64,000 nucleotides of DNA, from positions 161,386,001-161,450,000 of the forward strand of contig NC_086102.1 of the NCBI RefSeq assembly GCF_963921235.1. Reading direction: 5' to 3'. The translations under genes were made by a program, and so were the position numbers. The stretch comes from Mobula hypostoma (Eukaryota). Below, one piece after another: positions 1-55,600 of the stretch. Each line of letters opens with the position of its first letter. Within the stretch, counting starts at the first letter, position 1. The notes beneath the pieces were generated by a model. The model was not told where the DNA came from and ran no database searches. It saw only the letters and a list, made by a program, of their open reading frames with translations.

Positions 1-1633
1 CTCCAATGGCAAAACTTCCAGAAAAAAAGAGGAGTAGAGGAGCTATGATAGTAAAACAAACAAAAGCTTTCTTTGTATCTGGGGGTGAGGCACCACAGTT
101 TTATAAATAATTTAAATCTTTGCAGTGCCTTAAAGACGTGCCTGCTAGATTTGAGTTTTTAGTTACAGGAAAGCCAATGCCAGATGTGCTTTGGTATAAG
201 GGATAGTACCAGATCAGTCAGTGTGTGCATTACAACCTGAGTTACAACTCCAGTGGTTCTGGTTCACTAACTATCCATAATGCGCAGAAGGAGGATAGTG
301 GCTGGGACTCCTGCAAAGCATTTAACTCATTTGGAGATGCAACTTGCACTGCAGAGAAAATTGTGATTACCAAGTAAAGAAGCACACCCAGACCAAGCAG
401 AACAAACTGAATCCTTTGAAATGAAAATTGACAACTTGCTTTCTGAAGTCAAAACTGATCCTCTGCCAGAAAAATATCTCCCGTCTGTAACTCTACCTAT
501 ACAGAGAAAGTGTTTACAATTGAAGAAAAAGAGCAGTGTGCAGTAATAAGAGTCTGATAATACTTTCAAACAGTTCAGTACTACAACAGACTGCGCAATA
601 GTTGAAGATGGTTCTTTTGTCATTTTCGAAGCCATAAATACAGCAGTTTGTGAAAATAAATATGAACCAAAACTAACTTCAACTTCTGTGCAAGTTAAAG
701 AAAACACAATGTCTATAGAAAGTACTAATATGCTAGAGTCTGCAGAAGAAGATTTTGTAATAGGGATCCAGAGGGACAGTTAGCAAGATTTCCATTGTTG
801 CTTCAAGAAAAACAAATTATTGAAGAAGAATGCTCTTCAGATTTTAAGCTAGGTACAGTTGCAAAGCCAGCTGATAGGCTAGAAAAATTAGGCATCAGTA
901 TCACTCCTGCAAAAAGGGCAGTAGAAGCTGTCAACATTGATGAAAGTAATTTGGATATGGGGAAGGATAGGATGGGAAGAACTGAACTAAAAATACAGAC
1001 TGAAGAGTTATTGCAATCTACAGTTACCCAGCAGTACCCAAAGAAAGCAGCACCTAGTTATAAAGGAAAACAGCAGCCAGTAGTTTCAGCAGATAAATCA
1101 ACATCGGGTGTATCAACTGAGGCTATATATCAGGAAACACAATCTCAACAACGTGTAGCAATGGCTAAATCAGAGGGTTTTTCTCAAGAATTTAAATCTG
1201 TAGAGTCAATTGGAAAAATGGAAGTTGTGAGTCATGTAAAAGATATTAGAGATGCAATATTTAGCACTGGTGCCCCTTCGCTGTCTGTTCTCGTCAAACC
1301 CTTGTATTTCTAAAATGAAAATGCCAAGCAAAACACTAATAAAAGGTACTATAGTCAATCCAATTATTATTAAAGGCCTTATTGATATCATCGCAGATGA
1401 AGGCAGCCAAGTGACATTTAGCACGTTGATAAAAGGAGTGAGAAGTGTAAATTGGTATATCAATGGGAAGAAAATTACTTCAAAAATTAGTTCAAATGTT
1501 TTCAGGATTTCGATGCATATTCACATAATCAACAAAGTACAGAAAGAAGAACATCAAGGAGAATATGTCTTTGAGATACTGATTGAAGCAAGAATAGCAA
1601 CTACTTCTGCAAAACTTACTGTTGTAATAAGAG
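1..1633 (+). pseudogene. TTN: Decayed cardiac N2B exon homologue (I25 + N2B unique sequence + I26); 5' part outside window
   Basis: 78-377 reads [43 protein letters not shown]...[32 protein letters not shown] (I25-like; stops at 108, 204, 375). Further stops at 544-549 and 781, with frame changes 0/1/0/1. I26-like [14 protein letters not shown] ends at donor G|GTTGGA (1633/1634). Confidence 0.88.
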
Positions 1634-4600
1634 GTTGGATTATGGGGATAAAACTTTATGAATATGAAATTCACAATCTAATCCATTCAACTGACAAAAC
1701 AGTTAACTTTCGTTTTTATTTTACTCTAATAAATTAATATGACTCAATCTTTTGTCCCACCACCCTTTTCCTTCTTTCTTTCCCATAATATTTTAATGGT
1801 AAGGAAGTAATTGTGTTACCGACTTGATATCAAAATACAATGCTGTCAAAGCTTGTTAAAACCACATTCTTTTTCCCCCACGAAATATGCATTATAAATG
1901 TTAAATCTTGACAGTATTGTTTAAAAAAAAACTTAATGTGAATTTAATACCCTTTATGTGATCTTCATATGCTCTTACTAACAATAACAAAAAGCACTTA
2001 AAGTTAACCTTATGTTTAAAATATTGCTATGGATATTTTATTCAATTTTCACACCTTTTTATTTTGTTATTAACAATTAATTAACGTCAACTGCCATTTT
2101 AAAATTTTTACTAACACAATATTGCTCTCATCCCCATATCCATTTTTGAGGAGATGCTAGATAATTATCATCACCATCACTGTTCCATAATGAGAGGACA
2201 ATTGAATATTTCTATACTCTTCATACTGTATATGTCAAATAAATGTTGAATTTCATCCATTGAAATATTTTCATTGAGCACAGCCAGCTAACAACTTTAA
2301 ACCATCATTTCTTCTCTACAGTCACTCCATGGATTCTTAACTTCTGTCACTTCTGAGATTTCAGCGGGCCAGGACTAAACTCTATGCTGAAAGAATTAGT
2401 TTGTTGTTACAATCTTCTTACATTTTCTTTTAAATTTATATCTACAGTGCCTCCAGCTTTCAAAAGGAAGATTGAATCACAGGAGGTGATAATTGGACAT
2501 GCTACTCAGTTTGAATGTGAGGTTGAACCTGTATCTGATGTGAGGTTCCAGTGGTTCCGGGCTAGAGCCGAACTCCGTGATAGTGAAAAATATAGCATTG
2601 TGAACAAGAAATATATTTCCATCTTGAAACTTCTGAAGCCACAGCTAATTGACTGTGGAGAATATACTTGCAGAGCATCAAACCAGAGTGGAAGTGTAAG
2701 CAGCACAGCTAAATTGATTGTGACTGGTAAGTAGATTAAGTTTTGATTTTTACGTTTCACTTAATAATTTAATTTTCAATTTGATTTGGTCTTAGAAGAT
2801 TTGCATAGATTTAGCTTTATGTTACCATTTCATGTAATCAGAATGTTAGTTTCATACTTTAAGTAATGACCTGGATAGAAGCAACAAAGGTACCACTGCT
2901 AAATTTGCTGAAGGCACAAAAATAGATGGCACAGTAAACAGTGAAGGTGACAAAGTGAATCTACAAAGGAGTATTGATAGGTTAAGGGAGTGTGCAAAGG
3001 TCTGGCAAATTGAGTATCATGTCAAAAAATGTGGAATTGTCTATTTTGTTATAAAAAATTAAGTATATCATCTAACTGGTGAGGGATTGCAAGGCAAACA
3101 AGAGAAAATCTGTAGATGCTAGAAATCTGAGCAACACTCACAAAATGCCAGAGGAACTTAGCCAGTCAGGCAGCATCTATGAAAAACAGTACAGCTGATG
3201 TTTCAGGCCGAGACCCTTCTTCAGGATTGAAGAAAAAAGATGAGAAGTCAGAATAAGAAGATGGAGGAAGGGATTGCAAAACTCTGAGGTGTAGAGGGAT
3301 CTCAATGTCCTAATGCATGACTCACAAAAGGCTAGACTGCAGGTATTACAAATAGGAAAGTGAACACAAAGTTATTATTTATTGATAGGTGAATTGAATA
3401 TCGAAGTGGAAATGTTTTGTGGAGCATTCCTAAGACTTTGTCTGGACTACAGCATTCATTATTGGTCTCATTATATAAAGAAGGATGCTTATACTGTACA
3501 TTGAAAGCGTTTTAGGAAGGATTTACTAGACTAATATCTCAGATATGCAAGTTTTACAAGGAAGCACTTTGGAACAGGCTAGTCTCATATTTACTGGGGT
3601 TTGAAAGAGTGAGAGGGATCCTGGGAGTCTTCAAAGGGTGGTTGCTGAGAGGAAATTAGCTCTTGACAGAGCCTCTTAGTCTAGTGGTCTCTGTTTAAAA
3701 ACATGGAGTTACCCATAAAAATAGAGATGAAGTGATACTTTTCTCTCATTGGGTTGTGAATCATTGGAATTCTCTACTTCGAAGGTGGGTGGAAGCAGTG
3801 TTTTCAAATATTTTTAAGGTAGAGGTAGATAGATGCTTGTAAAACAAAGAGGTAGGCAAGAATACAGAAATGCGATTACAATCACATTGGTCCTTATTTT
3901 ATTGAATTGTGGAAGACGTTCAAGGGATTGAGTGGCCTGCTCCTGTTCCTAGTTTGTGTATTTGTATGTATGTTCATATGTAAAAAGATCATTGTAGTTT
4001 GCAAATGAGTGGAACAATATTACTTTCCAAAATTGTGTAGATTTTGTAAGATGTCTTCTATTTCTAACACTTCAATTTCATATAACACAAGTATTGAGTT
4101 TACATTTCTTTCAGTATCTCTCAATAATGCAATACACATCTTTGGCATTTAAAGCTGTTTTGATACCTAGACAAAATTGTTTGAAAAAATATATTTGTTT
4201 AATTTGGTAAGATCAATAAGTGATCTAACAAATACATTAGAACATCAGCAGTTCTCTTTCTCTTAAGGAGATAGGACAATGTACCAGTTCTTAATTATTA
4301 TCTTAAAATTTAATTCCTTCAGTAAATGACAATACTCAACCCAGATGTTTATTTTGCAGAGCTGACCCCACCAAGCTTTGTAACAAGACTGGCATCAGTA
4401 ACAACATTTGTAGGTAAAACTGCAAGACTTGAGTGCACAGTAGCTGGATCACCTGTGATTCATACGGTTTGGCAGAAGAATGGTATTAATATTACAGATG
4501 AAGAGAACTATAATGTATCAGCCAAAGGCAACAAACGTGCTTTAGAATTTAGTAACTTAAATGTTCAGAACAAAGGCAACTATTCTTGCAAAATTACCAA

Positions 4601-7600
4601 TAACTGTGGCACTGATATCTGTTATGCTGATCTAATCGTCCTTGACAAACCGTATTTCACTAGGACCCTTGAATCTACTCAGACTGTAATTAACAATAGT
4701 GTACGTCTTGAATGTCAAGTAGATGAAGACACAGCAGTAACAATTTCGTGGAAAAAAGATGGATTAGCACTTCATTCCAGCAAATATTATAAAATTACAT
4801 TTGAAGACAAAGTAGCAGTTTTGGAAATCCTGAAAACTAGGTTGAAAGATGCTGGGAGTTATGAATGCATGGCTTCCAATGAGGCTGGAAGTGATTCCTG
4901 CTCAGCACTATTAACAGTTAAAGGTAAGAAATATTGTAAATCACAAGCTGTTTTTAAGCAGTACTTGCAGTTACCCAATATAAAACTAAAAATATTTTTT
5001 GCAGGTTCCATTATAGCCAATGTCTCTTGCTGTATTATTTGTTTTTCTTTTAATTTTCTTATGACATAAGGGCTGGATATTTGGCCCATGTGGGTTCTTA
5101 GAGCAATCTCATCAATGCATTTCTACACTTAGCTGTAACCCACTCCTGTATGTGTATCAACTCCAACTGAGCTCCTGCCATTTACCTTTCATTGGAGTAG
5201 TTTAATGTAGCCAAAAAAAACTATAAGCCAGCATATTTTTGGGTTTCTGGGAGGAAACTGGAACACCTGGAGCAAACCCACAGAAATCACAGAAAGAAAA
5301 TGCAAACTCAAAATAGACTGCACTGGATTTCAGGAGGAACCTTGGTCAATGCACATGAGAGGCAATAGCATTGACTGCTTTGTGATAGTGCTATGCTGAG
5401 AAATACTTTAATCATAGTTTCTGTATTTTACATTTATTCATTTGTACTTCTGATATAGTGATTTAATTAAAATGTCACAAGTAAAGTAGGTTTTCTAAAG
5501 CAGTTGACTCTCTTGTAACTGTATCTCATCTTGAGTTTGTTGCTTCTGACAATCCTCTTCCAAAGGACTCCTGCTAGACTCCCTCATATTTTCCTCCATT
5601 TGAAGTCAACTGAAATGCTTGACAGTAACTGAAGTTTTACTCGGTTACCTTCACTGATTGCTCTGTTGCTCACTTGTTTCTGATTAAGCAACACTTCACT
5701 TTTGAAATTGTAATTCTTACTTCGAATCCCTTGATAATTCCTCCTATCTCCCTGAGCTCATCAAGCCTCTGAGGTAATTTTGCACTTTCAATTCTGACTT
5801 GCTAAGCATTCCTAATTTTAATCACTTTCCTAAGGTAGGCCTTTACTATCAAGCTCTGGAATAGTCCTTTGTCTCCCTTCCTTTCTTTCTTTTTTAAGGA
5901 GACTTGTTAGATCTCACCTCTTTGATCAAGTTGTCTATAATCAGCTTGTTATCTCCTTTTTGTGGTTTGTGTTAAATTGTTGTTTATTAGTCATCCTATG
6001 AAAGACCTTGGGCGTTACGTATGTGCCTATAATAGTAAATGTCCAAAAAAATGGACATTAACGTCTTCCTTGTTACATAATCAGTAATACTGAAGAAATA
6101 ATGAGAATATAAGAAATAGAGGATCATGTAATTTGGATCTGTTCAACCATTCATTGTGATAAAGGTTGGTCTTTTACCTCAGCCATGTTTTCCTGTTCTA
6201 CCCTATATCTATTATTTTAATATCTAAAAAATTGATCTCTGTCCTGAATATACTTATGAAATGAGCCTTCATGGCTCTCTTCAGTGGAGAATCCTCGATG
6301 CTCTGGGTGAAAAAATGTACAGTATTCTCTTCTCAGATCTTGTTATTATGACCCTTGTCTTATATGCCCAAACCAGGTAATATCAGCCCTGTCAAATTTT
6401 GTAAGGAGTTCGAATTTTTCATGAAATCATTTATTTTTGTAAATTGCCGGGTATAGGCCCAGACTACATAATCTCTTCTCATAAGACAATAATTCTATAT
6501 TAGGAAACACACTGGTGAACGGATGTACTTTAATTGAATTGGTACTCAACTAGGTATTTGCTTTTATAAATTGACTGCAAAATTATCTTCAAAGTTCAAA
6601 GTATGAACTTTGCAAGGTATGACTTGTCTCCTTACAGGCAGCCACAAAACAAAGAAACCCAGTAGAGCCCATTAAAAGAAAGACTATGAAAAACTCAATA
6701 TGCAGAAAAAAACTGTGCAAACAATAAAAGTAAGGAAGTAACATTCAGAGCTGAAATTCTTGAAACTGAGTCCACAGCCACAAAGCCAGTCAGCACTGCA
6801 GCTGATTCAGGAGACTGTTATTTGCTGGCCACAGCCTCAGTTCAAATGAATAAATCTCGCGAGCAGTGAGCTGAACACCGGCCCTGATAGTCTTATCTTT
6901 TAAAACCAGTCCATTGCTTAAAATCCTCCAAATAGTTGTTTCTCACTCTCGGACATGGGCCCTGTTGCTTCGATGCGTTTCTAGGCCTGGGACCCACTGC
7001 CTGGATTCGGCCCATACCTGACCTTTCCAGTATAGCCTGGCACTTAAATCCGTCAAACATCAGCAAGGCAGAGTTGGGTGGTGGAGCCCAGGCTTGCTCT
7101 CATAGTCCACTTCAGCAATGACCGTACATTGGCTTATTCCTCGCTCTTGAGCCCTGGCCCCCCGCCCCCACCTCAACGCAACCATCCTGGACCTTCAAAA
7201 CTTCAGTTTGCACTCCAAAAATGCTAGGTCAACAAGCAGTTCAAAATCTCATCTCCAAAAAGGAAGTTAAATGTTATTGATTGAAAAGATTGTTTTTGAG
7301 AAAAAGTGTAATTAATAAAGTAGTTAATAGTTTTGTTTGCTGCCAGCAAATTGTTGCTGTACTTCACCAGTGTTATCCTAAACCAAAACTACAATAGTAA
7401 CTATCATAAAAAATTTTGCAACTACAATTGTAGTTTTATTCTTTTCATTGGAATTCAGATTCATAAAACCTGTGAAAATCTTATTTGATGGTGATAGGGA
7501 AGCAGATTTGTTGTGTTTATTTTTTGCTTTTATTTCATAACGGAAGACATTACACATAGAAAATTGATCATTTGAAATGGGATGCAGTTACTAAATCAAG

Positions 7601-22600: not shown

Positions 22601-25600
22601 TTTGTTAGCCAGTCTTTACATTGTAACACCTGATATTACGGATATTGGCGAATACAAGTGTACTGTAAAAAATGATGTGGGAAGTTGCTCATGCAGTTCT
22701 ACAGTCAGGTTGAAAGGTCAGTTAATGTGTTTCTGGGAGCATATTTGGCTTCTGCAATTTGAAACAATGTTCAGTTATTTATGGAAAAAAACTACCTTTT
22801 AGATTAAAGCATTTCTACACAATAATGAAAAGCTAAAATTAAAACTCATTTTTGTATAACTATTTGTTTTAAATTAGAACCCCCAAGATTTATAAAGAAG
22901 ATTGAAAATATGACCATATTGTCAGGTAATTCAGTTGTATTCCAATGTCAAGTAAAAGGCTCAAAGCCTATTTACGTAACTTGGATGAAAGATAGAAGTG
23001 AACTCCAAGAAGATGGTAATATTGCTTTGTCTTTTGAGAATAATATTGCTACTCTTCAAATAAATGCTGTTGGAGAAAATCATGCTGGGAAGTATACGTG
23101 CCAGGTCCAGAATGATGCAGGAACTGAGCAGTGTTTTGCCACTTTGTTGGTAGCAGGTTAGTTAATTGTTTGGCCTCCATTTTAATTAATAGTGGATTCA
23201 GATTTTTTTTAACCATGAATCAACTGAAATGAATTAATGCAAGTCATGTATTGAAGAGATTTCTTTTCCCTCATAGAACCAGCAAAAATCACAGAACAAG
23301 CACAGTCACTCAGAGTGACAGCAGGAAATGCAGCAAACCTGGAATGTACTGTAACTGGTACACGAGAACTAACAGTTAAATGTTTTAAGGATGGTAATGA
23401 AATGGTGTCCAGTAGAAAACACAGGATCAGCATTGAGCATAATGTGGTCAGCCTAAAGATTCCTTCTGTTTCTAATGAAGACACTGGGGAATATACTTTT
23501 GAAGTCAAGAATCAGTTTGGAACCAGCAGCTGTAAAGCTTCGTTGACAGTATTAGGTTGGTGTTTTGCTTGCAATTTGAATTTGATTATGAAATTATGTT
23601 CACATTAATCATCAGCAAATATAAAAGCTGTAGGCATTTTTGCATATGCAATAGGATTAAGATTTTTGCCAAATTTAGTGTGCTGGCTAGGTTTTGTCTC
23701 TCTCCAGGCAGCAAGGCTATTGTACCTGGTATTCTCAGATGGTTTTCATTCAATCGTTGATTAACCCTGAGCTTCTTAACTGGGTACTCCCAGGCAATAC
23801 ACGAGGATGCTCCAGATTCTAGCATCTGCGCTCTCTCTTGTTTTCATAATGATGCTGGTATATTATTTCCCATATAATATCCCAATTCTGCAGGGAAATA
23901 CTGGTGATTCCTTTTATAATTGCCAACCTTTTTAATGTGTAATTATCAGTAACTTAGTGATTTCCACGCAAGTCTTCATGTTGTGGGTTAACAATGCAGC
24001 CAAATTTTATAGTGTGCTATTTGTGCTACGTGCCCAGAGACAGGGAGAATGTGTCTCCATTCAGGAAGGGAAACATGAATAATAATGGAAATTTTAGACT
24101 GGTGAGTCTCATGTCAGTGGTGGGGCAGTTACTGGAGAGGGTTCTTAGAGATAGGACTTATGAATAATTAGAAAACTATGGCCTAGTAAGGAACAGTCAA
24201 CATGTTTGTATGCAGAAAAACATGTCTTACTAACCTAATTTTTTTAAAGAGGCAATGAAGGTGATTGATGAAAGCAGAACTTTGAATGTTGTCTGCATGG
24301 ATTTCAGAAAGGTGTTTGACAGTATTTTATATGTATATATTAATAAAAATCTGGATGAAAATATAGATGGATGAGTTAGTGAGGTTTCAGTTTAATGAAG
24401 ATTGGTGGTGTTGTGGATAGTGTAAAAGAACGACAAAGGATAGAATGAGATATAACCCAGTTGCGGATGTGGGTGGATAAATGGCAGATGGACTTTAACC
24501 CAGCTGTGGTATTAACTGTGGTATTGCACCTTAAGAGATCAAGTGTAAAGTGACAGTACACTGTCAATGGCAAGACCCTTAACAGTGTTGATAAGTAGAG
24601 AGATCTTGGAGTTCAAAGTTATAGCTCTCTGAAAGAGGCTGCACAGATTGATATGGTGATAAAGAAGGCATTTGGTATGCTTGCAGGGCAAATAATTTAC
24701 ACACTAACTGGTGGGTGCCCAGGATACTCTGCCTGGGTTGTGGTGGAGGCAAATGCAATAAAAGTATTCAGGAGGTTCTTAGATAGACACATGAATGTAC
24801 AGGAAATGGAAGGATATGGACATTGTGTAGGTAGAAGAGATTAATTTAGTCATGCGTTTGATTACTAATTTAATTCATTTGGCACATCATTGTGCCTGAG
24901 GGGCCACATTTTGTGTTGTACTATTCTACATTCTCTATTTTTTGTTTTATAAATTCATTGGAATAAAAAGGTCTTGTCAAAGACTAAAGTCAGTAAAGAT
25001 TGTTTAAATTTATTAATTTTGAGTATATTAGGCATTTAAACTTTTAAAGCTTTTTAAACATTTAAAATATTTAATAGTTTAAAAGTTTGAAATGCTCTTT
25101 AATAACTTTTGAGTATATCTGATTCTATGTGTCTCAGAATCATTCAGAAGATTTCAGTGTCCAATAGCAGAAGGCACTTGCTAAGCCATTTCACCAACAG
25201 GAGAAAATCTGCAGATGCTGGAGATCCAAAGCGACACACACAAAATGCTGGAGAAACTCAGCAGGCCAGGCAGTATCTGTGGAAAAGAGTAAATAGTCTC
25301 TTTTACAGATGCTGCCTGGCTTGCTGAGTTCCACCAGCATTTTGTGTCTGTTGCTTTGGTAAGCAAAGTATATGGCATAGGCATTTGTCAATTTTTTGGG
25401 GTATTTTCAGTGGATCAGGGTGTTTTGTCCCATTGTCGCATGTGATACCATTTTATCACCATAGCCTTGCTGTCATGAAGAATGTTGCTACGATGGAATC
25501 AGCTAATACTTTGTGAGAGAGCTGCATTAGAATGTGACATATTAGTTACCGATAAGGATGGTCATTGATGATTGAAAAATCTATGTTCCATAACTGTGGA

Positions 25601-31600: not shown

Positions 31601-34600
31601 TGTACTACTGGATAAATTAGCACATAAAAGTTAACTTTAATCTGGTCAGTTTTTATAGTTTGTTTATAATCTTGTTAATTGTTTTTTATTTGATTTTTAG
31701 AACCCCCACGTTTTACAGATAAAATAATGTCCCAGGATGTTGTACTCGGTTCTACAGTGCAATTTAGGGGTGTTGTGAAAGGAAGCATACCATTATCCAC
31801 AAAATGGTTCAAAGGAGACAGAGAATTGATGCATGGTACAATGTATAATATTTGGAATGAAGGCTCAATGTATTTTCTAGAATTGGTCTCAACTAAGATA
31901 TCTGATGCGGGTAGATACACTTGCCAAGTTAGCAACGATGTTGGTACAGATGCCTGTTCTGCCGAACTGTTTGTTAAAGGTGTGGATTTTTTTTTATCTA
32001 TAGTTTTGAGTTGTATGCATTGTTTTTCTTTTTGCTGCTTTGCTACGTTGAACTTTAAGCTATATCATTTTGTCTTCTTGACAGTTGACCAGATGTTGTC
32101 AAAGAAATGTATCTTGGCAAACATGAAGTGTGCATTGTGGTCTTGTGACATTCCAATCTGAGTTGATTGTCAGACTCAGTGCTCTCAGAAGCCCAACTGT
32201 ATACAAGTTGAGGCACATTTAATGATGGGGAGTCCTGTCTCATATAGTGGCAATTATAAGTATTCTCATAAGCTAGTATCTCGCACCACTACTGTGTAGA
32301 AAGCTATTTTACTGGTTGCAGTGATGAGGAACATGAAAAAGAATGTTGTTTTGCTGATTTAAGAGAGAGCTAACTTTTGAATGTGTTTGGTGAATCTGAT
32401 CTTTGTATTTTATGGCCAATTATTTATGCATATACATTTGCTTGAATTTGTTTTGATTGCCTTATAAACGTGTGTTGAGATCTGTAATATTTTGGATTCT
32501 AGAACCTCCAAGCTTCATTAAAAAGCTGCACTCCCCAACAATCCTAAAGGAAGGTGTCTCAGCACGTTTTGAATGCAGTATAAGGGGCACACCTAACATT
32601 AAAGTTACCTGGTACAAAAATGGTGATGAAATTATAGTCAGTGAAAAGTTTCTGATGTCTTTTGATGGCGCTGTGGCAGTTCTTGAGATTATTGATGTGA
32701 TTCCGGAAGACAGTGCATGCTACATCTGTGAGGCACAAAATGAAGCTGGCAGTGAGAGCTGCGGCACTGAAGTTGAAGTTAAAGGTCTGTAGTAATGTCT
32801 TTTATTCAATAAGACTATATATGTTTTACTTTCTTGAGCAGGGATTTTGATAGCTTCTGTATTTTTATTCATTTAGATATTTTTACTGTGATTACTTTTT
32901 TTAGAACCACCAAGCTTTAGACGGAAACTTCAATCCATTGAGATAGTTAAATCCAATGATATTTCCCTCGAATGTGAGGTGGCTGGTACAGGTCCCTTTG
33001 AAGTTATGTGGTATAAAGATAATAAACAAATTCGACGCAGTAAAAAATACAAAATGGTCTCTGACAGTTCTGTAGTTAGTATTTGCATTCTAAACTCCGA
33101 TACCTTGGATGTTGGCGAATACAAGTGCATCATTCAAAATGATGTGGGATGTTGTTCCTGCAGTTCTACAGTCAGTTTGAAAGGTCAGTTTTACTATGTT
33201 GTCAGAAGATATTTTCCTTTTGATGGTTAAGGTGATGTTAAAAACATCTTATTACGTGCTTGGACACTCAATGCTGATTTACTTGCAAAATTCTTTCAAT
33301 TTATCTGACCTCTTAAGTGTCATGAAGAAGCGAAATAATCCCATTAAGTCATGTTATTATTTATTTTAAACTAGAACCCCCAGGATTTATAAAGAAGATT
33401 GAAAATATTACAACAGTATCAGGCAATTCAGTTGTATTCCAAAGTCAAGTAAAAGGCTCAAAGCCTATCTATTTAACTTGGATGAAAGATAAAGATGTTA
33501 TTGAAGAAGATGGTAATATTGCTTTGTCTTTTGAGAATAATATTGCTACTCTTCAAATAAATGCTGTTGGAGAAAATCATGCTGGGAAGTATACATGCCA
33601 GGTCAAGAATGATGCGGGAACTGAGAAGTGTTTTGCCACATTGTTGGTAGCAGGTCAGTAGGATATTGATTACCTTAATATTTCCCTGCACTCCAATGAT
33701 TTTTCTAATCATAAGTCAATTCAAATACTTTGCAATGCATCAACTAAATTAAAATAATGACATATAAAAGAGATTTTTATTCCCATAGAACCAGCAAAAA
33801 TCACAGAACAAGCACAGTCAATCAGTGCGACAGCAGGAAATACAGCAAACCTGGAATGTACTGTAACTGGTACACCAGAACTAACAGTTAAATGTTTTAA
33901 GGATGGTACTGAAATGATGTCCAGTAGAAAACACAGAATCAGCTTTGAGCATAATGTGGTCAGCCTAAAAATTCCTTTTGTTTCTAATGATGACACTGGT
34001 GAATATACTTTTGAAGTCAAGAATCAATTTGGAACCAGCAGCTGTAAAGCTTCGTTGACAGTATTAGGTTGGTGTTTTATTTTCAATTGGAAGTCAGCTA
34101 ATCTACTTATCTAATGGGTTAAAATATGGTTATTAAATAAGGAAATCCTAATTGCATTGAACATAAACTTATATAAAGGCAATGTTAGAATTTTTAAATT
34201 GAAATCTAGTGATAATAGGATTTGGCTGATTAGCTATAATGGAAAATTTCAAATTAATGTTATTTTTCAACAGTCACCTTAGATATATATAAAACATGAC
34301 AAATCTTACTTTAAAAATGCACAATAAATTTTGATTCATTTAAATATTTTCTATATGAATTGATTGACTGTGCTTTTGTCACTTTACCTTGGACAGATCA
34401 ACTAATTCCCCCATTATTCAAAAGAAAATTACGCAGAATGGACAGTGTTTTAGGGTCTTCCATACAAATGGAATGCAAAGTTTCTGGTTCTCTTCCAATG
34501 AGCTTCTCATGGTATAAGGATGGCATATTAATAACGACTAGTGAGAAATACAAAATATCATCTCAAGATAACACAACAACTTTGGAAGTGAATCAAACAG

Positions 34601-43600: not shown

Positions 43601-46600
43601 TTCCACAAATTTAACAATTCCACTTTCCAAAAGATAATCCTCTGTAAAACCAGTGCTACATGTGTTGTATTTTGGTTTTCTAGAGCCACCATCTTTCATC
43701 CAGAAGCTGGAGTCATCAAAAATTCTGAAGAAGGGCGAGTCAGCACATTTTGAATGCAAAGTGACTGGAACACCTGAAATCAAAATTTCGTGGTTCAAGA
43801 ATGATACTGAAATCAGAAACAGTGAAAAATATAAAATGCATTTTGATAATTCTGTAGCATTTCTTGAAATTAATGACTCTGGTGTAGAAGACAGTGGCGA
43901 TTACATTTGTGAAGCTCAAAATGAAGCTGGCAGTGTCAGCTGCAGTGTTGCAGTTAATGTCAAAGGTAGGCAGTTATTTCCTGTTACCAATCAAAAAATG
44001 TTATCAAATGACTCATTGTAAATATATAAATGAGTCAATTATGTTCTTTTTTCCCAGAACCACCTGTTTTCAGTAAAATGCTTGAGACATTGGATGTAAT
44101 AAAAAGTTCTGATGTCATACTGCACTGTGAATTCAGTGGTACATCTCCTTTTGAAGTTACCTGGTACAAAGACAAAAGGCAAATTCGAGCAAGTAAAAAA
44201 TATAAAATTACATATGAAAACAATGTAGCAAGTCTTTACGTTCTTAAAGTGGAGACACCTGACATAGGGGAATACATGTGTATGGTGAAGAATGATGTGG
44301 GAAGTATTAGTTGCACTGGCACATTAAATCTCAAAGGTTAGTAAATTTTCTAAGTTCAATACTTAACTTTTACTGTACCAATTTTGGGAAATTATTACTG
44401 TGAGTTTTTGTTCCACACATAAGATATACTTTATTTCTTTAGAGCCACCCATGTTTGTGAAGAAACTTTCAAACATTTCTTCAGTATTCGGAGAGCCTGT
44501 CACATTACAAGGTACTGTTAGAGGTTCGGAACCAATTCAAGTAACATGGATGAAAGAAAAGAAACAAGTGAAAGATAATGAGGACATAACTATTACCCAT
44601 GTACAAAACATTGTTACTTTGCATATTTCAAAAATGGAGCCTGTCCATGCTGGAATGTATGTTTGCCAAATCAGAAATGATGCTGGAGTGCAAGAGTCCT
44701 CTGCTGCATTATCACTCTTGGGTCAGTAACTTAATGTCAATATATATGAAATTTAATTCATGTTTGAGAACACTGCAGACCATTGTTTCATTAACGATAT
44801 ACAAGAATATTTTGTAAAATTGAATTTGCTTCTTACAGAACCTGCCACTATAGTGGAAAAAGCAGAATCTGTCAACGTAACTTCAGGAGATCCGGTAATC
44901 TTGGAATGCATTGTTAAAGGCACACCTGAACTAAAAGTAAAATGGTTGAAAGACGATCAAGAATTAGTGTCTGGCAGAAAATACAAGATCAGTTTTCTTA
45001 ATGGAATTGCTACTTTAAAAGTTTTATCTGCAGAGAAAGCAGATGGTGGTGAATATACCTTTGAAGTCCAGAATAATGTGGGTAGCAGCAGCTGCAAAGT
45101 ATCAGTCAACGTTCTAGGTTTGACTTCCTGTGTTTTCTTTACTCTTTATTAATTCATTTTTAAAATCTCTTTCTAATCATGGTTCATTTTTGCTATTTAA
45201 ACAGATCGTATTATTCCACCAACATTTATTAGAAAATTAAAGAAAATGGATGGTATCTTGGCTTCTCCACTCAAAATGGAATGCAAGGTTTCTGGATCGC
45301 CTCCAATTACTATGTCTTGGTTCAAAGATGGCCATGAGATTGTCCATGGAGAAAAATATCACCTGGTATTTGGAGAAAATAAATGTGATTTGAAAATCAA
45401 TACTTTGGAACTATCCGATGCTGGCAATTATTTATGTAAAGCAACCAATGCTGCAGGAAGCGATGAATGCAGTGGTGTTTTAACTGTGAAAGGTCAGTTT
45501 GATTTTTAATAATGGTACTAATTTTTATTATTCTTTGTATAAAAATTGCACTTTATGGTTTAATAATTTTCATTTGATAGCAATTTGGCTATAAATTTGT
45601 GAATATTTATTGCAAATGAGTGGTGTTCAAAGACATAATTTATGAAAAGCTGTAAACTATAAATGACAAAAATATAAAATAAAAGACAGGACATGGTTGT
45701 TATATCAATTAATCAGGCAATATCTTTAGAGATAAAAACAGTGCTTATACTTCAGGTTGATGACCTTTCTGTCACAATCGGGGCGCTGGTAGCGGACCCA
45801 AATGCAAGACACAGACACTGAAGTACAAGGAACAGGACCTGACTAGAGTAGGGACGTGACAGGATACAGACAAGGAGCAGGGACAAGAACGCAGACTTGG
45901 GCTAGGACATGGACTAGACACAGGGAACCCGGACAAGGAACTATGAACTAGGCGCCTGGGCTTAGACTCCGAGCCAGAGACTGGACAAGGACCTAGGACC
46001 TGGGTCTTGCCTCGGGCTCAGACCCCAGAACTAGGCAAGGACATGACATGGCTGGGGTCTTGGCTCTTGAGGCTTGAGGCTAATAACTCGGAGGCTGGAG
46101 CTCAGAGACAGACTGGGAACTGTACATCAACATAGAGCCGGGACTTATCCTTCGAAAAGCCAGGACTCATCTTTAACACGGTACTAACAGGAGACTGGAC
46201 AGTACATAGACAGAGCCAAGACTTATCCTTGGACAAGCCGGGACTCATCTTTAACACGACACCAGCACGAAACAGGACAGTACCTAGGCATATGGCCAGG
46301 ACTCCACTTCTCCACACCAAGGTGGGACAGGACCATCCATCGGGTAACAGCAGAACAGCCAGACTTACCCAACAGAGGTAAAGACAAGACAGGACAGGAC
46401 AGGTCCCCCCACAGGGCAACAGCAGAACAGCCTGACTTACCCCACAGAGGCAAGGACAAGACAAGACAAGACAGATCTCCCCGCAGGGCAACAGCAGAAT
46501 GGCCTGACTTACCCCACGGAGGCAAGGATAAGGCAGATCCCCCTGCAGGGCAATGGCAGAATGGCCTGACTTACCCTACAGAGGCAAGGACAAGACAAGG

Positions 46601-49600
46601 CAGATCCCCCCACAGGGCAATGGCAGAACAGCCTGACTTACCCCTCAGAGGCGAGGACAAGAAGAGACAAATACCAAAGAATGACAGACAGTTCCATTTC
46701 TGCATTGGCAATTGAATTTGACAGTGGTGCAGGGGAGGTATCCAGGCAGAGAGTCAGGCAACGGTGGAAAAGAGAGTGAGGGAACAGGACAGTCCAGCAA
46801 GGAATCCCTGGTTTGCAGAGGTATTTATGTCTCAGCCCCAAAACGAGAATCATGTGCCCACAACAGAAACTGGGGAAAACCAGAAACCCCGGAACAAGGA
46901 ATCCTGGACCGGACCATGAACCGGAACACGGATTTCCCGGACCGGACCATGACACTTTCATCAAATTGAGGCAGGTTAGAAATTAGTTAATATTTCAGTT
47001 TGAAACCCTGTTCTGATGGAGAGTTTTGATTCAAAACATAAACAATTTCTTCTCCCCCACTGGTGGCACTAAACCCACTGAATTCCTCTCACAAACAACA
47101 GGAATTCTGCAGATGCTGGAAATTCAAGCAACATACATCAAAGTTGCTGGTGAACGCAGCAGGCCAAGCAGCATCTATAGGAAGAGGCGCAGTCGACGTT
47201 TCAGGCCGAGACCCTTCGTCAGGACTAACTGAAGGAAGAGTGAGTAAGCCCTCTCTTACTCACTCTTCCTTCAGTTAGTCCTGACGAAGGGTCTCGGCCT
47301 GAAACGTCGACTGCGCCTCTTCCTATAGATGCTGCTTGGCCTGCTGAATTCCTCTCACAGATTGCTTGTTGATCCAGCTTCCAACACCTGTAGTCTCCTG
47401 TGTCTCTTAAAATCAGTTGGAGAGAAGGGGGAGAGAGGGTGGACCCAAAGAAATCTCTGTGATAGAGGCCAAGAGATAGCAAAAGGGATGTATGGGTGTA
47501 GGGCCAGCTGATCTTACAAATTACAATTAATTTGTCTAGAGAAGTTGTAAATAGGAAAAGACAAGTCATAGCATAGAGGAGAAAAATACACAATGCTGGA
47601 ATTGTGAGATAGAAAATGGGGAAATGTTTGAAAGGACACCAAAGTTAGTCTTGAGTCAGGATGGAAACAAATTCTTTAAAAATTATTTGTAGAACGGAAT
47701 AGCCTGATGTCCTGATCCTTTAACTTAGACCTAAACTTTAAGGAAGGGAAAAATATAGGATAAAGTTTGTAGTAATATGGCTTGCTGTCAGAAGAAGAGG
47801 ATTACAAAGGTGTGAAGTCTATAAAAAAAAGGACAATTGATTTTATTTCCATTTACAACAAAATGTCTCTAAAATTTTCCATTTAAAATAAATTATGCGA
47901 TATATTATTTCATTTTCACCCTTTAGAACCACCCTCATTTGTGACTAAACCAGATCCTCAAGAAGTTTTACCTGGCTCAACAGTGAAATTTGTAAGTGTT
48001 ATTACTGGCACAGCACCATTGAAAGTAAAATGGTTTAGAGGCAGCACTGAACTGATAACAGGAAGAAGAAGTCGCATATCTTTAAGTGACTCAACATCAG
48101 TACTTGAGCTACTAAATGTGGAACCTTCCCAAAGTGGTGACTACACTTGCCGAGTTAAGAATGAAGCTGGTGAAGATTTTTGTACAACAAAATTAGTTGT
48201 GAAAGGTTTGTAAAATACACATTTTAAAGATGAACATGAGTAATAACATTTTATCAAAGTTACAAGTATATATTTTTACAATTATTTGTCTATGTTTTTT
48301 TTTACCAGAACCAGCAGTATTCCAGAAAAAAATAAAAGATTCCAGTGCAGTACTGGGAAAGTCAGTTTGTCTTGATTGCATATACTCTGGTACTCCAGAA
48401 ATCAAAATAACCTGGAAAAAGAATGGACTTGAGATACTCCAGTCTGAAAAGCACATTATTACAACTACTGAAACATCTTGCATTTTGGAAATTCTCAACT
48501 CTGTTAGAGATGATGGTGCAACATATACTTGTGAAGTACAAAATGATGCTGGAGGGGACACTTGTCAGGCTGAAGTAAAAATACTGGGTTTGTTCACTTT
48601 TAATTTCTTCCATTTAGAAACCATAGAAAAACTACAGCACAGAAACAGGCCTTTTGGCCCTTCTTGGCTGTGCTGAACCATTTTCTGCCTAGTCCCACTG
48701 ACCTGCACAGGGACCATATCCCTCCATACACCTCCCATCCATGTATCTGTCCAATTTATTCTGAAAAGTTAAAAAAGAACCCGCATTTACCACCTCGACT
48801 GGCAGCTCATTCCACAGTCCCTCCACTCTCTGTGTGAAGAAGCCCCCCCTAATGTTTCCTTTAAACTTTTCCCCCCTCACCCTTAACCCATGTCCTCTGG
48901 TTTTTTTCTCCCCTTGCCTCAGTGGAAAAAGCCTGCTTGCATTCACTCTATCTATACCCATCATAATTTTATATACCTCTATCAAATCTCCCCTCGTTCT
49001 TCTACGCTCCAGGGAATAAAGTCCTAACCTATTCAACCTTTCTCTGTAACTGAGTTTCTCAAGTCCCGGCAACATCCTTGTAAACCTTCTCTGCACGCTT
49101 TCAACCTTATTAATATCCTTCCTGTAATTTGGTGACCAAAACTGAACACAATACTCGAGATTCGGCCTCACCAATGCCTTATACAACCTCATCATAACAT
49201 TCCAGCTCTTATACTCAGTACTTTGATTAATAAAGGCCAATGTTCCAAAAGCTCTCTTTACGACCCTATCTACCTGTGACACCACTTTTAGGGAATTTTG
49301 TATCTGTATTCCCAGTTCCCTCTGTTCTACTGCACTCCTCAGTGCCTTACCATTTACCCTGTATGTTCTACCTTGGTTTGTCCTTCCAAAGAGCAATACC
49401 TCACACTTGTCTGTATTAAACTCCATCTGCCATTTTTCAGCCCATTTTTCCAGCTGGTCCAAATCCCTCTGCAAGCTTTGAAAACCTTCCTCACTGTCCA
49501 CTACACCTCCAATCTTTGTATCATCAGCAAATTTGCTGATCCAATTTACCACGTTATCATCCAGATCATTGATATAGATGACAAATAACAATGGACCCAG

Positions 49601-52600
49601 CACTGATCCCTGTGGCACACCACTAGTCACAGGCCTCCACTCTAAGAAGCAATTCTCTACTACCACTCTTTGGCTTCTTCCATTGAGCCAATGTCTAATC
49701 CAATTTACCACCTCTCCATGTATACCTAGCGACTGAATTTCCCTAACTAACCTCCGATGCGGGACTTTGTCAAAGGCCTTACTGAAGTCCATGTAGACAA
49801 CATCCACTGCCTTCCCTTCATCCACTTTCCTGGTAACTTCCTCGAAAAACTCCAATAGATTGGTCAAACATGACCTACCACGCACAAAGCCATGTTGACT
49901 CTCCCTGATAAGTCCCTGTGTATCCAAATGCTTGTAGATTCTGTCTCTTAGTACTCCTTCCAATAACTTGCCCACTACCGACGTCAAACTTACCGGCCTA
50001 TAATTTCCCGGATTACTTTTCAATCCTTTTTTAAACAACGGAACAACATGAGCCAGTCTCCAATCCTCCGGCACCTCACCCGTAGACACCGACATTTTAA
50101 ATATATCTGCCAGGGCCCCTGCAATTTCAACACTAGTCTCCTTCAAGGTCTGAGGGAATACCCTGTCAGGTCCTGGGGATTTATCCACTTTAATTTGCCT
50201 CAAGATAGCAAGCACCTCCTCCTTTTCAATCTGTACAGTTTCCATGATCTCACTACTCGTTTCCCTTAATTCCATAGACTTCATGCCAGTTTCCTTAGTA
50301 AATATAGATGCAAAAAACCCATTTAAGATCTCCCCCATTTCTTTTGGTTCTGCACATAGCCGACCACTCTGATCTTCAAGAGGACCAATTTTATCCCTTA
50401 CAATCCTTTTACTCTTAGTATAGTTGCAAAAGCTCTTTGGATTATCCTTCACTTTGACTGCCAAGGCAACCTCATGTCCTCTTTTAGCCCTCCTGATTTC
50501 CTTCTTAAGTATTTTCTTGCGCTTTTCATACTCCTCAAGCACCTTATTTACTCCCTGTTTCCTATACATGTCATACAACTCTCTGTTCTTCTTCATCAGA
50601 GTTGCAATATCCCTTGAGAACCAAGGTTCCTTATTCCTATTCACTTTGCCTTAAATCCTGACAGGAACATTTGTGGAATTAAAACCAATACCTTTCTTAT
50701 TTGCTTTCTTTTATCAAAACATTTGGTATGCATCTTCTTTAATCATAATAATGTATTGTTTTTATCTTAGAACCGCCAACATTTGTCCAACATTTAGAGC
50801 CTCTGGAAGTAACCGTCGGTGACTCAGGATCTTTTCAATGTGCGCTGACTGGAACACCTGAAATAAAAGTAGCTTGGTACAAGGGAGATACAAAACTGAG
50901 ATCCACCCCAAATTGCAAAATGGAATTTGTGAACAATATTGCAAAATTGGAATTAAAGAAAGTAGCAATGAACGACTGTGGGGAATTCATATGTAAAGCT
51001 GAAAACAAAATAGGTGTCTGTTCATCAAAAGCTGTGCTCACTGTACAAGGTAATTTTGGATGATACATTAATTAGCATTGTGCAGAATGTGAATACCTTT
51101 GTTGGAACATTTTGACCTTTTAACTATTGGTAAAAGAAGCTTGTACAATTATATTAACTTTTCTGTTATGGTTTGTTTTACAGAGCGCAAAACTGCACCT
51201 TCTTTTGTAAGAAAAGTTAAGAATATGGAAGTAACCCTCGGTCTTTCAGTAACATTTGAATGTCATACTGCTGGTTCAGCTCCCATTGAAACTTCTTGGT
51301 TTAAAGATGGTGTAAAGTTGGTCCCTGGAGAAAATTTAAATATGTCTTTCATGGAGAATGTAGCAACTCTTAAAATTCTTAAAGCTGAGATGGAGCATGC
51401 TAGTGAATACACTTGCAAAGCATCAAACATGATGGGAGATGCTTCATGCAGTTCCAGATTATCTGTCAAAGGTATATTGAGTTAAACATTTATGATTTTG
51501 ACTTCTATAATATTTACCATAAACTATATAGAACATAGAATAGTACAGCACAGTACAGGTCCTTCGGCCCACAATGTTGTGCCGACTCTCAAACCCTGCC
51601 TCCCATATAAGCCCCCACCTTAAATTCCTGCATATACCTGTCTAGTAGTCTCCTAAACTTCACTAGTATATCTGCCTCCACCACCGACTCAGGCAGTGCA
51701 TTCCACGCACCAACCACTCCTTGAGTAAAAACCTTTCCTCTAATATCCCCCTTGAACTTTCTACCCCTTACCTTAAAGCCATGTCCTCTTGTATTGAGCA
51801 GTGGTGCCCTGGGGAAGAGGCGCTGGCTATCCACTCTATCTATTCCTCTTATTATCTTGTACATCTCTATCATGTCTCCTCTCATCCTCCTTCTCTCCAA
51901 AGAGTAAAGCCCTAGCTCCCTTAATCTCTGATCATAATGCATACTCTCCAAACCAGGCAACATCCTGGTAAATCTCCTCTGTACCCTTTCCAATGCTTCC
52001 ACATCCTTCCTATAGTGAGGCAACCAGAACTGGACACAGTACTCCAAGTGTGGCCGAACCAGAGTTTTATAGAGCTGCATCATTACATCGCAACGCTTAA
52101 ACTCTATCCCGCGACTTATGAAAGCTAACACCCCATAAGCTTTCTTAACTACCCTATTCACCTGTGAGGCAACTTTCAGGGATATGTAGACAAGTACCCC
52201 CAGCTCCCTCTGCTCCTCCACACTACCAAGTATCCTGCCATTTACTTTGTACTCTGCCTTGGAGTTTGTCCTTCCAAAGTGTACCACCTCACACTTCTCC
52301 GGGTTGAACTCCATCTGCCACTTCTCAGCCCACTTCTGCATCCTATCAATGTCTCTCTGCAATCTTTGACAATCCTCTACACTATCTACAACACCACCAA
52401 CCTTTGTGTTGTCTGCAAACTTGCCAGCCTACCCTTCTACCCCAACATCCAGGTCGTTAATAAAAATCATGAAAAGTAGAAGTCCCAGAACAGATCCTTG
52501 TGGGATACCACTAGTCACAATCCTCCAACGTGAATGTACTCCCTCCACCATGACCCTCTGCCTTCTGCAGTCAAGCCAATTCTGAATCCACCTGGCCAAA

Positions 52601-55600
52601 CTTCCCTAGATTCCATGCCTTCTGACTTTCTGAATAAACCTATGTGGAACCTTGTCAAATGCCTTACTAAAATCCATGTAGATCACATCCACTGCACTAC
52701 CCTCATCAATATGCCTGGTCACCTCCTCAAAGAACGCTATCAGGCTTGTTAGACACAATCTGTCTTTCACAAAGCCATGCTGACTGTCTCTGATCAGACC
52801 ATGATTCTCTAGATGCCCAGAGATCCTATCTCTAAGAATCTTTTCCAACAGCTTTCTCACCACATATATAAGGCTCACTGGTCTATAATTACCCGGACTA
52901 TCCCTACTACCTTTTCTGAACAAGGGGACAACATTCGCCTCCCTCCAATCCTCCAGTACCATTCCTGTGGACAACGAGGACATAAAGATCCCAGCCAGAA
53001 GCTCAGCAATCTCTTCCCTCACCTCGTGGAGCAGCCTGGGGAATATTCCATCAGGCCCTGGGGACTTATCCATCCTAATGTATTTTAACAACTCCAACAC
53101 CTCCTCTCCCTTAATATCAACATGCTCCAGAACATCAATCTCACTCATATTGTCCTCACCATCATCAAGTTCCCTCTCATTGGTGAATACCAAAGAGAAG
53201 TATTCATTGAGGACCTCGCTCACTTCCACAGCCTCCAGGCACATCTACCCACCTTTTTCTCTAATTGGTCTTACCTTCACTCCTGTCATCCTTTTTTTCT
53301 TCACATAATTGAAGAATGCCTTGGGGTTTTCCTTTACCCTACTGGCCAAGGCCTTCTCATGCCCCCTTCTTGCTCTTCTCAGCTCCTTCTTAAGCTCCTT
53401 TCTTGCTTTCCTATATTCCTCAATAGACCCATCTGACCCTTGCTTCCTAAACTTCATGTATGCTGCCTTCTTCCTCCTGACGAGATTTTCCACCTCACTT
53501 GTCACTCATGGTTCCTTCACCCTACCATTCTTTATCTTCCTCACCGGGACAAATTCATCCCTAACATCCTGCAAGAGATCTCTAAACATCGACCACATGT
53601 CCATAGTACAATTCCCTGCAAAAACATCATCCCAATTCATACCCGCAAGTTTTAGCCTTATAGCCTCATAATTTGCCCTTCCCCAATTAAAAATTTTCCT
53701 GTTCTGTCTGATTCTATCCTTTTCCATGATAATGCTAAAGGCCAGGGAGCAGTGGTCGCTGTCCCCCAGATGCTCACCCACTGAGAGATCTGTGACCTGA
53801 CCCAGTTCATTACCTAGTACTAGATCTAGTATGGCATTCCCCCAGTCGGCCTGTCCACATACTGTGACAGGAATCCGTCCTGGACACACTTAACAAACTC
53901 TGCCCCATCTAAACCCTTGGAACTAATCAGGTGCCAATCAATATTAGGAAAGTTAAAGTCACCCATGATAACAACCCTGTTATTTTTGCACCTTTCCAAA
54001 ACCTGCCTCCCAATCTGCTCCTCTGTATCTCTGCTGCTAGCAGGGGGCCTATAGAATACTCCCAATAGAGTAACTGCTCCCTTCCTGTTCCTGACTTCCA
54101 CCCGTACTGACTCAAAAGAGGATTCTGCTACATTACCCACCCTTTCTGTAGCTGTAATAGTATCCCTGACCAATAATGCCACCCCTCCTCCCCTTTTTCC
54201 GCCCTCTCTATCCCTTTTAAAGCACTGAAATCCAGGAATATTGAGAATCCATTCCTGCCCTGGTGCCAGCCAAGTCTCTGTAATGGCCACTACATCATAA
54301 TTCCATGTACGTATCCAAGCTCTCAGTTCATCACCTTTGTTCCTGATGCTTCTTGCATTGAGGTACACACATTTCAGCCCTTCTACCTTGCTGTCTTTAC
54401 ACCGTATATTCTGCTTCTCTTTCCTCAAAGCCTCTCCATATGTTTGATCTGGCTTTATTCCATGCACCTCTTTCACTGCTCTATCGCTCTGGGTCCCATC
54501 CCCCTTGCAAATTAGTTTAATATAGTGTTGACATTTTAATATCTGCTTTCATGTTGCCTTGCATAGTTATTACTTTGTTACTTTTACAATAAAATATTTA
54601 TGTTTACATTTTTAGAGCCTAGGGTTGCACCCCGCTTTGACAAAAGACTAGAACCAGTAGAAGTTACAACAGGGGAAAGTGTGGATCTTGAATGCCATTT
54701 AACTGGATCTTTCCCAATTAAAGTTACTTGGCTGAAGGATGGCAAAGAGATTCGATCTGGTGGCAATTACAACATAACTTATGTAGAAAATACACCCCAC
54801 CTGATCATTCTGAAAGCAGACAAAGGAGATGTTGGTCAATACATTTGTGAGGCCAGCAATGATATTGGAAAGGATTCATGCAAAACTGAAGTGACTGTGA
54901 AAGGTACTGATCAATAATAATTACAAATCTTTGCTCTCTGTTATATCTTGTGAGCCTAGATGTTAGTAATTATAGAAGAAATCTTTTAAATATTTAAAAA
55001 TGAATGTGAGTTGTAAGAATCCAGGTTTGATTAGTTTCAAAAGATACTTCTTTAACATCTGCAGTGTGATTCTTAATGGTTACTTGGTCAATTTTTTTTT
55101 GCTATCCTGTGCATGTGCATTTCTTATTTTGATTTTCCTAACCATCTTTGGGTTGGAGCTTTTCTTGCTATAATAGTTGGCATTGCTTTTGTAGCTAATA
55201 GGTTTATTCAATATCCAGATATAGGTTAACTATTAATAAAATTGAATTAGGAAAAAAAATGAAAAGATCCAAACAAGGTAACAAAAATGCATAAACACCA
55301 ATAAATAAAAATATCAAAATAATACAAAAACAAAACTAAAGAGTAATACATTCCTCCCCAAGTTCTGCTCTACAATCCCTATGAAAATCAACAAGCTGCC
55401 AGAATTTCCACCAAATATGACTTTGTACATGATCCAGGAGGCAACTTCCTCAGCTTAAAGGTGACCAGAATCCTGTGGTGTAGTGACTAGAAGCCTTAGC
55501 TAAAGTTAGCATGCTTCACGACAACTGGTTGTTTATCACTTTCATAGTGCTACTTCTGTCGGTTACAGATCGTAAAATTCCACCAAGCTTTACTAAAAAG

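Follow-up and report, generated by a model that had tools for sequence, protein, structure and literature searches.

The titin exon that should encode the N2B element is broken in the ray Mobula hypostoma. Very probably it decayed into a pseudo-exon on the branch from which this animal descends, and the heart titin would then be without a canonical N2B. What is left of the exon occupies bases 1-1633 (+ strand) of the window, as the whole 64-kb stretch of DNA analysed is called here, and amounts to its 3' two thirds, with the start of the exon, I24 included, lying upstream of the window. In its ancestral form the exon would have coded for I24 and I25, followed by a long unique spring sequence and I26.

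N2B counts as the element that defines cardiac titin: it acts as a main spring, as a docking site for FHL proteins and as a kinase target through which diastolic stiffness is tuned, and passive tension falls when PKA, PKG, ERK2 or CaMKII phosphorylates it (PMC7912658). A nonsense mutation in the N2B exon of zebrafish ttna is lethal to heart function (PMC7912658), and in elephant shark the ventricle expresses the N2B exon, in an N2BA isoform, while skeletal muscle skips it (PMC12241362, 2025). A literature search found no report of natural N2B loss, or of an N2B pseudo-exon, in any vertebrate.

Identity of the exon and its intact relatives

The order of parts in the window, as seen by Pfam, tblastn and codon alignment, is I25 remnant, unique sequence and I26 remnant, and these share the strand of titin and come immediately before the I27 and I28-I29 exons. 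The same order is found in the three comparators described below. Human TTN exon 49, the N2B segment of elephant shark connectin (PMC12241362) and the zebrafish ttna N2B exon share this place upstream of I27/I28-I29, the single-exon Ig-Ig-unique-Ig layout and the phase-1 donor. Unlike those N2B elements, the ray exon has had its frame destroyed and about 590 codons of unique sequence deleted, and it cannot encode the spring or the signalling sites. By position, layout and sequence 1-1633 is the orthologue of the N2B exon, yet no open reading frame runs through it and, judged on these sequence features, it is filed as a pseudo-exon.

Comparators were fetched with the intact I27 ORF as the query, for which Logan assemblies of public sequencing runs yielded three ORFs. 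The closest, L003 (run SRR17051962), has an I27 protein 90% identical to that of the window and an open N2B exon of 1203 codons (L003 2252-5860) that ends 840 nt upstream of I27; a contig from a second sequencing run, L004, is 99.86% identical to it and replicates the 3' end of the N2B exon. Nucleotide identity between the window and L003 is 76-81%, introns included, and since even the introns align (at ~76%) L003 is considered a relative of the window's species. The other two, L005 and L006, were taken as outgroups (distant species): their I27 is 51-52% identical to that of the window, with ORFs of 1343 and at least 1189 codons, respectively, in the same position. The long ORFs of L003, L005 and L006 all contain I24, I25, 800-900 residues of unique sequence and I26, and they are colinear across more than 1000 residues (E 1e-147); all three are intact N2B exons. 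In the window, the remnants of I25 and I26 match L005 and L006 (tblastn, E 1e-18 to 1e-20). Because N2B is intact in these three comparators and expressed in elephant shark heart, its loss is lineage-specific. The proposal in the initial annotation, made from the window alone, of a pseudo-exon within an intact I-band resulting from loss in the lineage or in one paralogue, thus finds support in the intact exons of the comparators.

Protein databases were less informative about the remnant. The open piece of 194 residues (729-1310) had no match among 1.84 billion proteins in an exhaustive HMMER search, nor did the I26 ORF (1240-1734) in a word-indexed protein search. When the I25 and I26 pieces were compared with the PDB, generic titin and other Ig domains were matched and nothing N2B-specific.

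Two features of the outgroup contigs are recorded here in passing. An Ig-rich ORF of at least 2589 codons (L005 1-3793) ends 1.7 kb upstream of the N2B exon, and its sequence would fit a novex-3-type giant exon. The introns of L005 and L006 are just ~100 bp.

Lesions in the exon and its intact surroundings

Lesions were called in the reading frame of L003 from blastn together with global and codon alignment (Table 1). In all, the remnant carries three stops in the ancestral frame (108, 204 and 1488), at least seven frameshifts (of -1301 net, -10, -2, -1, about -50, -1 and -2 nt) and two large deletions.

Table 1. Parts of the N2B remnant and the first exons beyond it, by position in the window
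Feature	Position	Strand	Observations
I24-I25 linker remnant	1-80	+	Frame 3; in-frame 15-nt deletion near 30-36 relative to L003 (tblastn, codon alignment)
I25 homologue	81-374	+	Frame 3; TAA 108-110 (GAA in L003), TAG 204-206 (AAT in L003)
Deletion junction	366-399	+	L003 3146-4480 (~445 codons of unique sequence) replaced by 34 nt; net -1301 nt, frame shifted
Unique-sequence remnant A	400-846	+	Homologous to L003 residues 744-895; 79.6% nucleotide identity to L003
Site of in-frame 423-nt deletion	846-847	+	L003 4935-5357, residues 895-1035; L003 colinear with L005 and L006 there
Unique-sequence remnant B	847-905	+	Frame 3; homologous to L003 residues 1036-1055
369-nt stretch	906-1274	+	Open in frame 3; holds AVEAVNI motif; without counterpart in L003, L005 and L006
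Junction	1275-1306	+	Net loss of ~50 nt relative to L003 (at 1290-1299), frame 3 to frame 1; frame-3 ORF stops at 1311
Pre-I26 linker and I26 homologue	1307-1633	+	Open in frame 1 but damaged; I26-like domain ~1354-1632
GT donor	1634-1635	+	Phase 1; 30/31 surrounding positions match L003
I27 exon	2448-2726	+	First intact exon past N2B; dN/dS versus L003 0.10
I28-I29 two-Ig exon	4360-4923	+	Intact; dN/dS versus L003 0.22

Much of what the initial annotation had read from the letters stands. Direct translation confirms its frame-3 stops at 108 (TAA), 204 (TAG) and 375 (TAA) and its DSGWDSC in place of the usual I25 tyrosine-corner motif, in which Y has become D (codon 306-308). The repeated changes of frame that it described are found on translation of 1-1700, with the reading path going from frame 3 to 1, back to 3 and again to 1, and the gap of some 330 codons between I25 and I26 measures ~327. 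The short unique sequence in the ray N2B is the outcome of the net 1.3-kb and 423-nt deletions. In other respects the lesion map had to be redrawn. The third of the frame-3 stops (TAA 375-377) sits inside the deletion junction at 366-399. Further stops had been listed at 544-549 and 781 and are indeed present in frame 1, but they lie in shifted frames and the true lesions there are frameshifts: remnant A has indels of net -10 near 502-509, -2 at 549 and -1 at 769, with an in-frame +6 at 792, such that the TAATAA at 544-549 falls in the shifted stretch between the -10 and -2 indels and the stop at 781 was created by the -1 at 769. Treating I26 as unbroken, as had been done, hides a -1 at 1474 and a -2 at 1524, which together scramble ~16 residues in the open frame 1; between the two the ancestral frame reads 11 letters that match L003, but with a TAG at 1488-1490.

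The 369-nt stretch at 906-1274 resembles the beginning of I25 only weakly (E 0.02). It is either ancestral unique sequence that was lost in the L003 lineage or an insertion.

Antisense ORFs cross the remnant at 330-779 (150 codons) and 1209-1520 (104 codons), both on the - strand. Antisense ORFs of this sort also overlap many of the intact Ig exons; base composition is therefore their probable cause, and they are unlikely to be genes.

Might the exon be intact in the animal, and the lesions be errors of sequencing or assembly? For the single-base deletions at 769 and 1474 a sequencing error is conceivable. Errors of that type would not, however, account for three stops that arose by base substitution, for deletions of 10, ~50, 423 and ~1300 nt or for the many replacement changes, and the ~19 kb of neighbouring coding sequence is clean. 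The number and kinds of the lesions argue against an artefact, which was already held unlikely in the initial annotation and which we consider extremely improbable.

The surroundings of the remnant are in good order. The window, which contains 0 N and ~35% G+C, covers part of the titin I-band (+ strand). Searched with a profile made from its own Ig exons, it shows 69 complete Ig domains, carried by 68 exons, from 2448 to the window end. All of these domains are open-frame and cover the full model, at 90-132 bits, in keeping with the earlier reading that the 68 downstream exons are intact. The only broken Ig fragments that the same profile detects in the 64-kb window are the I25-like one (25 bits, with half the model covered) and the I26-like one (21.7 bits). 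The downstream Ig exons are phase-1 symmetric, mostly 279-291 nt and a multiple of 3 in length, with donors of the AAAG|GT type; that of I27 scores 65 bits with Pfam I-set. The ~19 kb of coding sequence adjoining the N2B remnant is error-free.

This good order bears on a further explanation, that the loss is confined to one copy. An intact second titin gene, or a duplicated N2B exon, would then serve the heart and the copy seen here would have decayed after subfunctionalisation, in the manner of zebrafish ttna and ttnb. Zebrafish does have two titin genes, of which the heart needs only ttna (PMC7912658), but a single connectin gene is described for elephant shark (PMC12241362). Moreover the rest of the ray locus is fully intact, unlike a decaying paralogue, and the missing N2B blocks have no match anywhere within the 64-kb window. 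We judge decay of one of two copies to be quite unlikely.

Several other features of the window deserve mention in their own right. Between 22800 and 41500 the Ig exons include repeated runs that are very similar at the protein level (only a few residues distinguish 22878-23156 from 33375-33653), a pattern that fits a recent multi-exon tandem duplication within the middle-Ig segment. Counts of middle-Ig domains are 51 for elephant shark and 63 for whale shark (PMC12241362), and the 69 in the Mobula hypostoma window alone are above both. Reverse-transcriptase-like ORFs of up to 653 codons are present in titin introns at 48692-54548 (- strand), where G+C climbs to 40-46%, and shorter reverse-transcriptase-like fragments occur near 37600 and 62200; these ORFs look like copies of a non-LTR retrotransposon. 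An intronic tandem array at 46134-46662, with periods of 62-78 and 134 nt, ~81% matches and a richer G+C content, is the source of spurious ORFs on the two strands, the longest of 175 codons.

Possible loss of constraint and its probable timing

Apart from the stops and frameshifts, the Ig domains of the remnant have lost residues that their relatives keep. I26 has three core substitutions (C to F, N to I and G to R), and each of the four Ig core residues altered in the remnant (Y, C, N and G) is otherwise conserved, in 61-69 of the 69 downstream domains as well as in L003 and L005. With Pfam I-set the I25 of the window scores 16.2 + 31.4 bits, in two pieces, and its I26 24.6 bits, whereas the intact orthologues score about twice as much: 72.5 (L003) and 75.2 (L005) for I25, and 50.5 (L003) and 60.1 (L005) for I26. 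At the nucleotide level the N2B remnant is 76-80% identical to L003, close to the 74-78% seen for most introns, with an intron segment just upstream of I27 reaching 83%; I27 itself is at ~90% and I28-29 at ~86%.

By the Nei-Gojobori method dN/dS versus L003 is 0.365 for N2B (dN 0.176), 0.10 for I27 and 0.22 for I28-29. The pairwise N2B value is well below 1. With L005 and L006 used to polarise the amino-acid changes in I25 and I26, 15 are assigned to the window lineage versus 6 to that of L003, which is a trend only and not significant (p = 0.078).

How old is the loss? In a simulation over the 406 aligned ancestral codons three stops are expected at ~0.05 neutral substitutions per site, with a plausible range of 0.02-0.14; the pairwise distance to L003 in introns or at synonymous sites, when halved, comes to 0.14-0.24. 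We infer that the loss probably came well after the L003 lineage had branched off, yet not recently. Decay of ~0.05 substitutions per site also explains the persistence of open stretches, of which one of 194 codons (729-1310) and others of 165 and 131 codons are left.

Those same stretches could be viewed otherwise. Part of the remnant might still be spliced in, whether as an I26-only exon from a cryptic in-phase acceptor (for instance one giving a start at 1355 and a length of 279 nt) or as a regulated poison or terminal exon that leads to a truncated novex-3-like titin. The donor that follows position 1633 differs from that of L003 at just one of 31 positions, in-phase AG sites would give open exons of 279-384 nt, and open stretches of 194 and 165 codons do remain. 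The candidate acceptors, however, are preceded by weak pyrimidine tracts (20 nt with 35-45% Y), the I26 remnant has 16 scrambled residues and is without the invariant C, N and G, and the long open stretches fit neutral decay at ~0.05 substitutions per site. Conservation near the donor is, for its part, unexceptional along the L003 alignment. A residual function of this sort appears quite unlikely.

Possible consequences for the heart, and known systems

With the exon read as a pseudo-exon, the consequences for expression would be considerable. Were it included, translation would end inside I25, in an mRNA with hundreds of downstream junctions. As the exon is unreadable, productive titin mRNAs would have to skip 1-1633 in every tissue, and the heart would be expected to rely on an N2A-like isoform, with tandem Ig domains and PEVK and no canonical N2B. 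A broader proposal, to which we incline with less assurance, is that N2B has been knocked out naturally in the ray, and possibly in an entire clade of rays: there would be one titin gene, and a heart without the N2B spring or its docking sites for kinases and FHL, in which passive stiffness would be set only by tandem Ig domains, PEVK and the splicing of an enlarged middle-Ig segment.

An ancient loss of N2B would be a natural experiment. How does a heart set and regulate its passive stiffness without N2B, and what compensates? The ray would, in addition, be a comparison case for the N2B-knockout mouse and for human N2B variants. The mouse with an engineered deletion of the N2B exon (Radke et al. 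2007 PNAS, reference 94 in PMC7912658) is reportedly viable, with diastolic dysfunction and cardiac atrophy. Like the ray it has titin without N2B and with the rest kept, a state compatible with life; its deletion was engineered, whereas the loss in the ray is natural, old and presumably compensated.

Two other systems offer partial likenesses. The N2A isoform of skeletal muscle resembles the product predicted for the ray in that it skips N2B and keeps the middle-Ig segment, N2A and PEVK; elsewhere in vertebrates, however, that skipping is a tissue-specific choice, while in the ray it would be forced everywhere, heart included. Zebrafish, with ttna and ttnb, likewise has one titin gene on which the heart does not depend for N2B, but that arrangement rests on a teleost gene duplication, whereas in the ray, within the 64-kb window, there is no sign of another titin gene.
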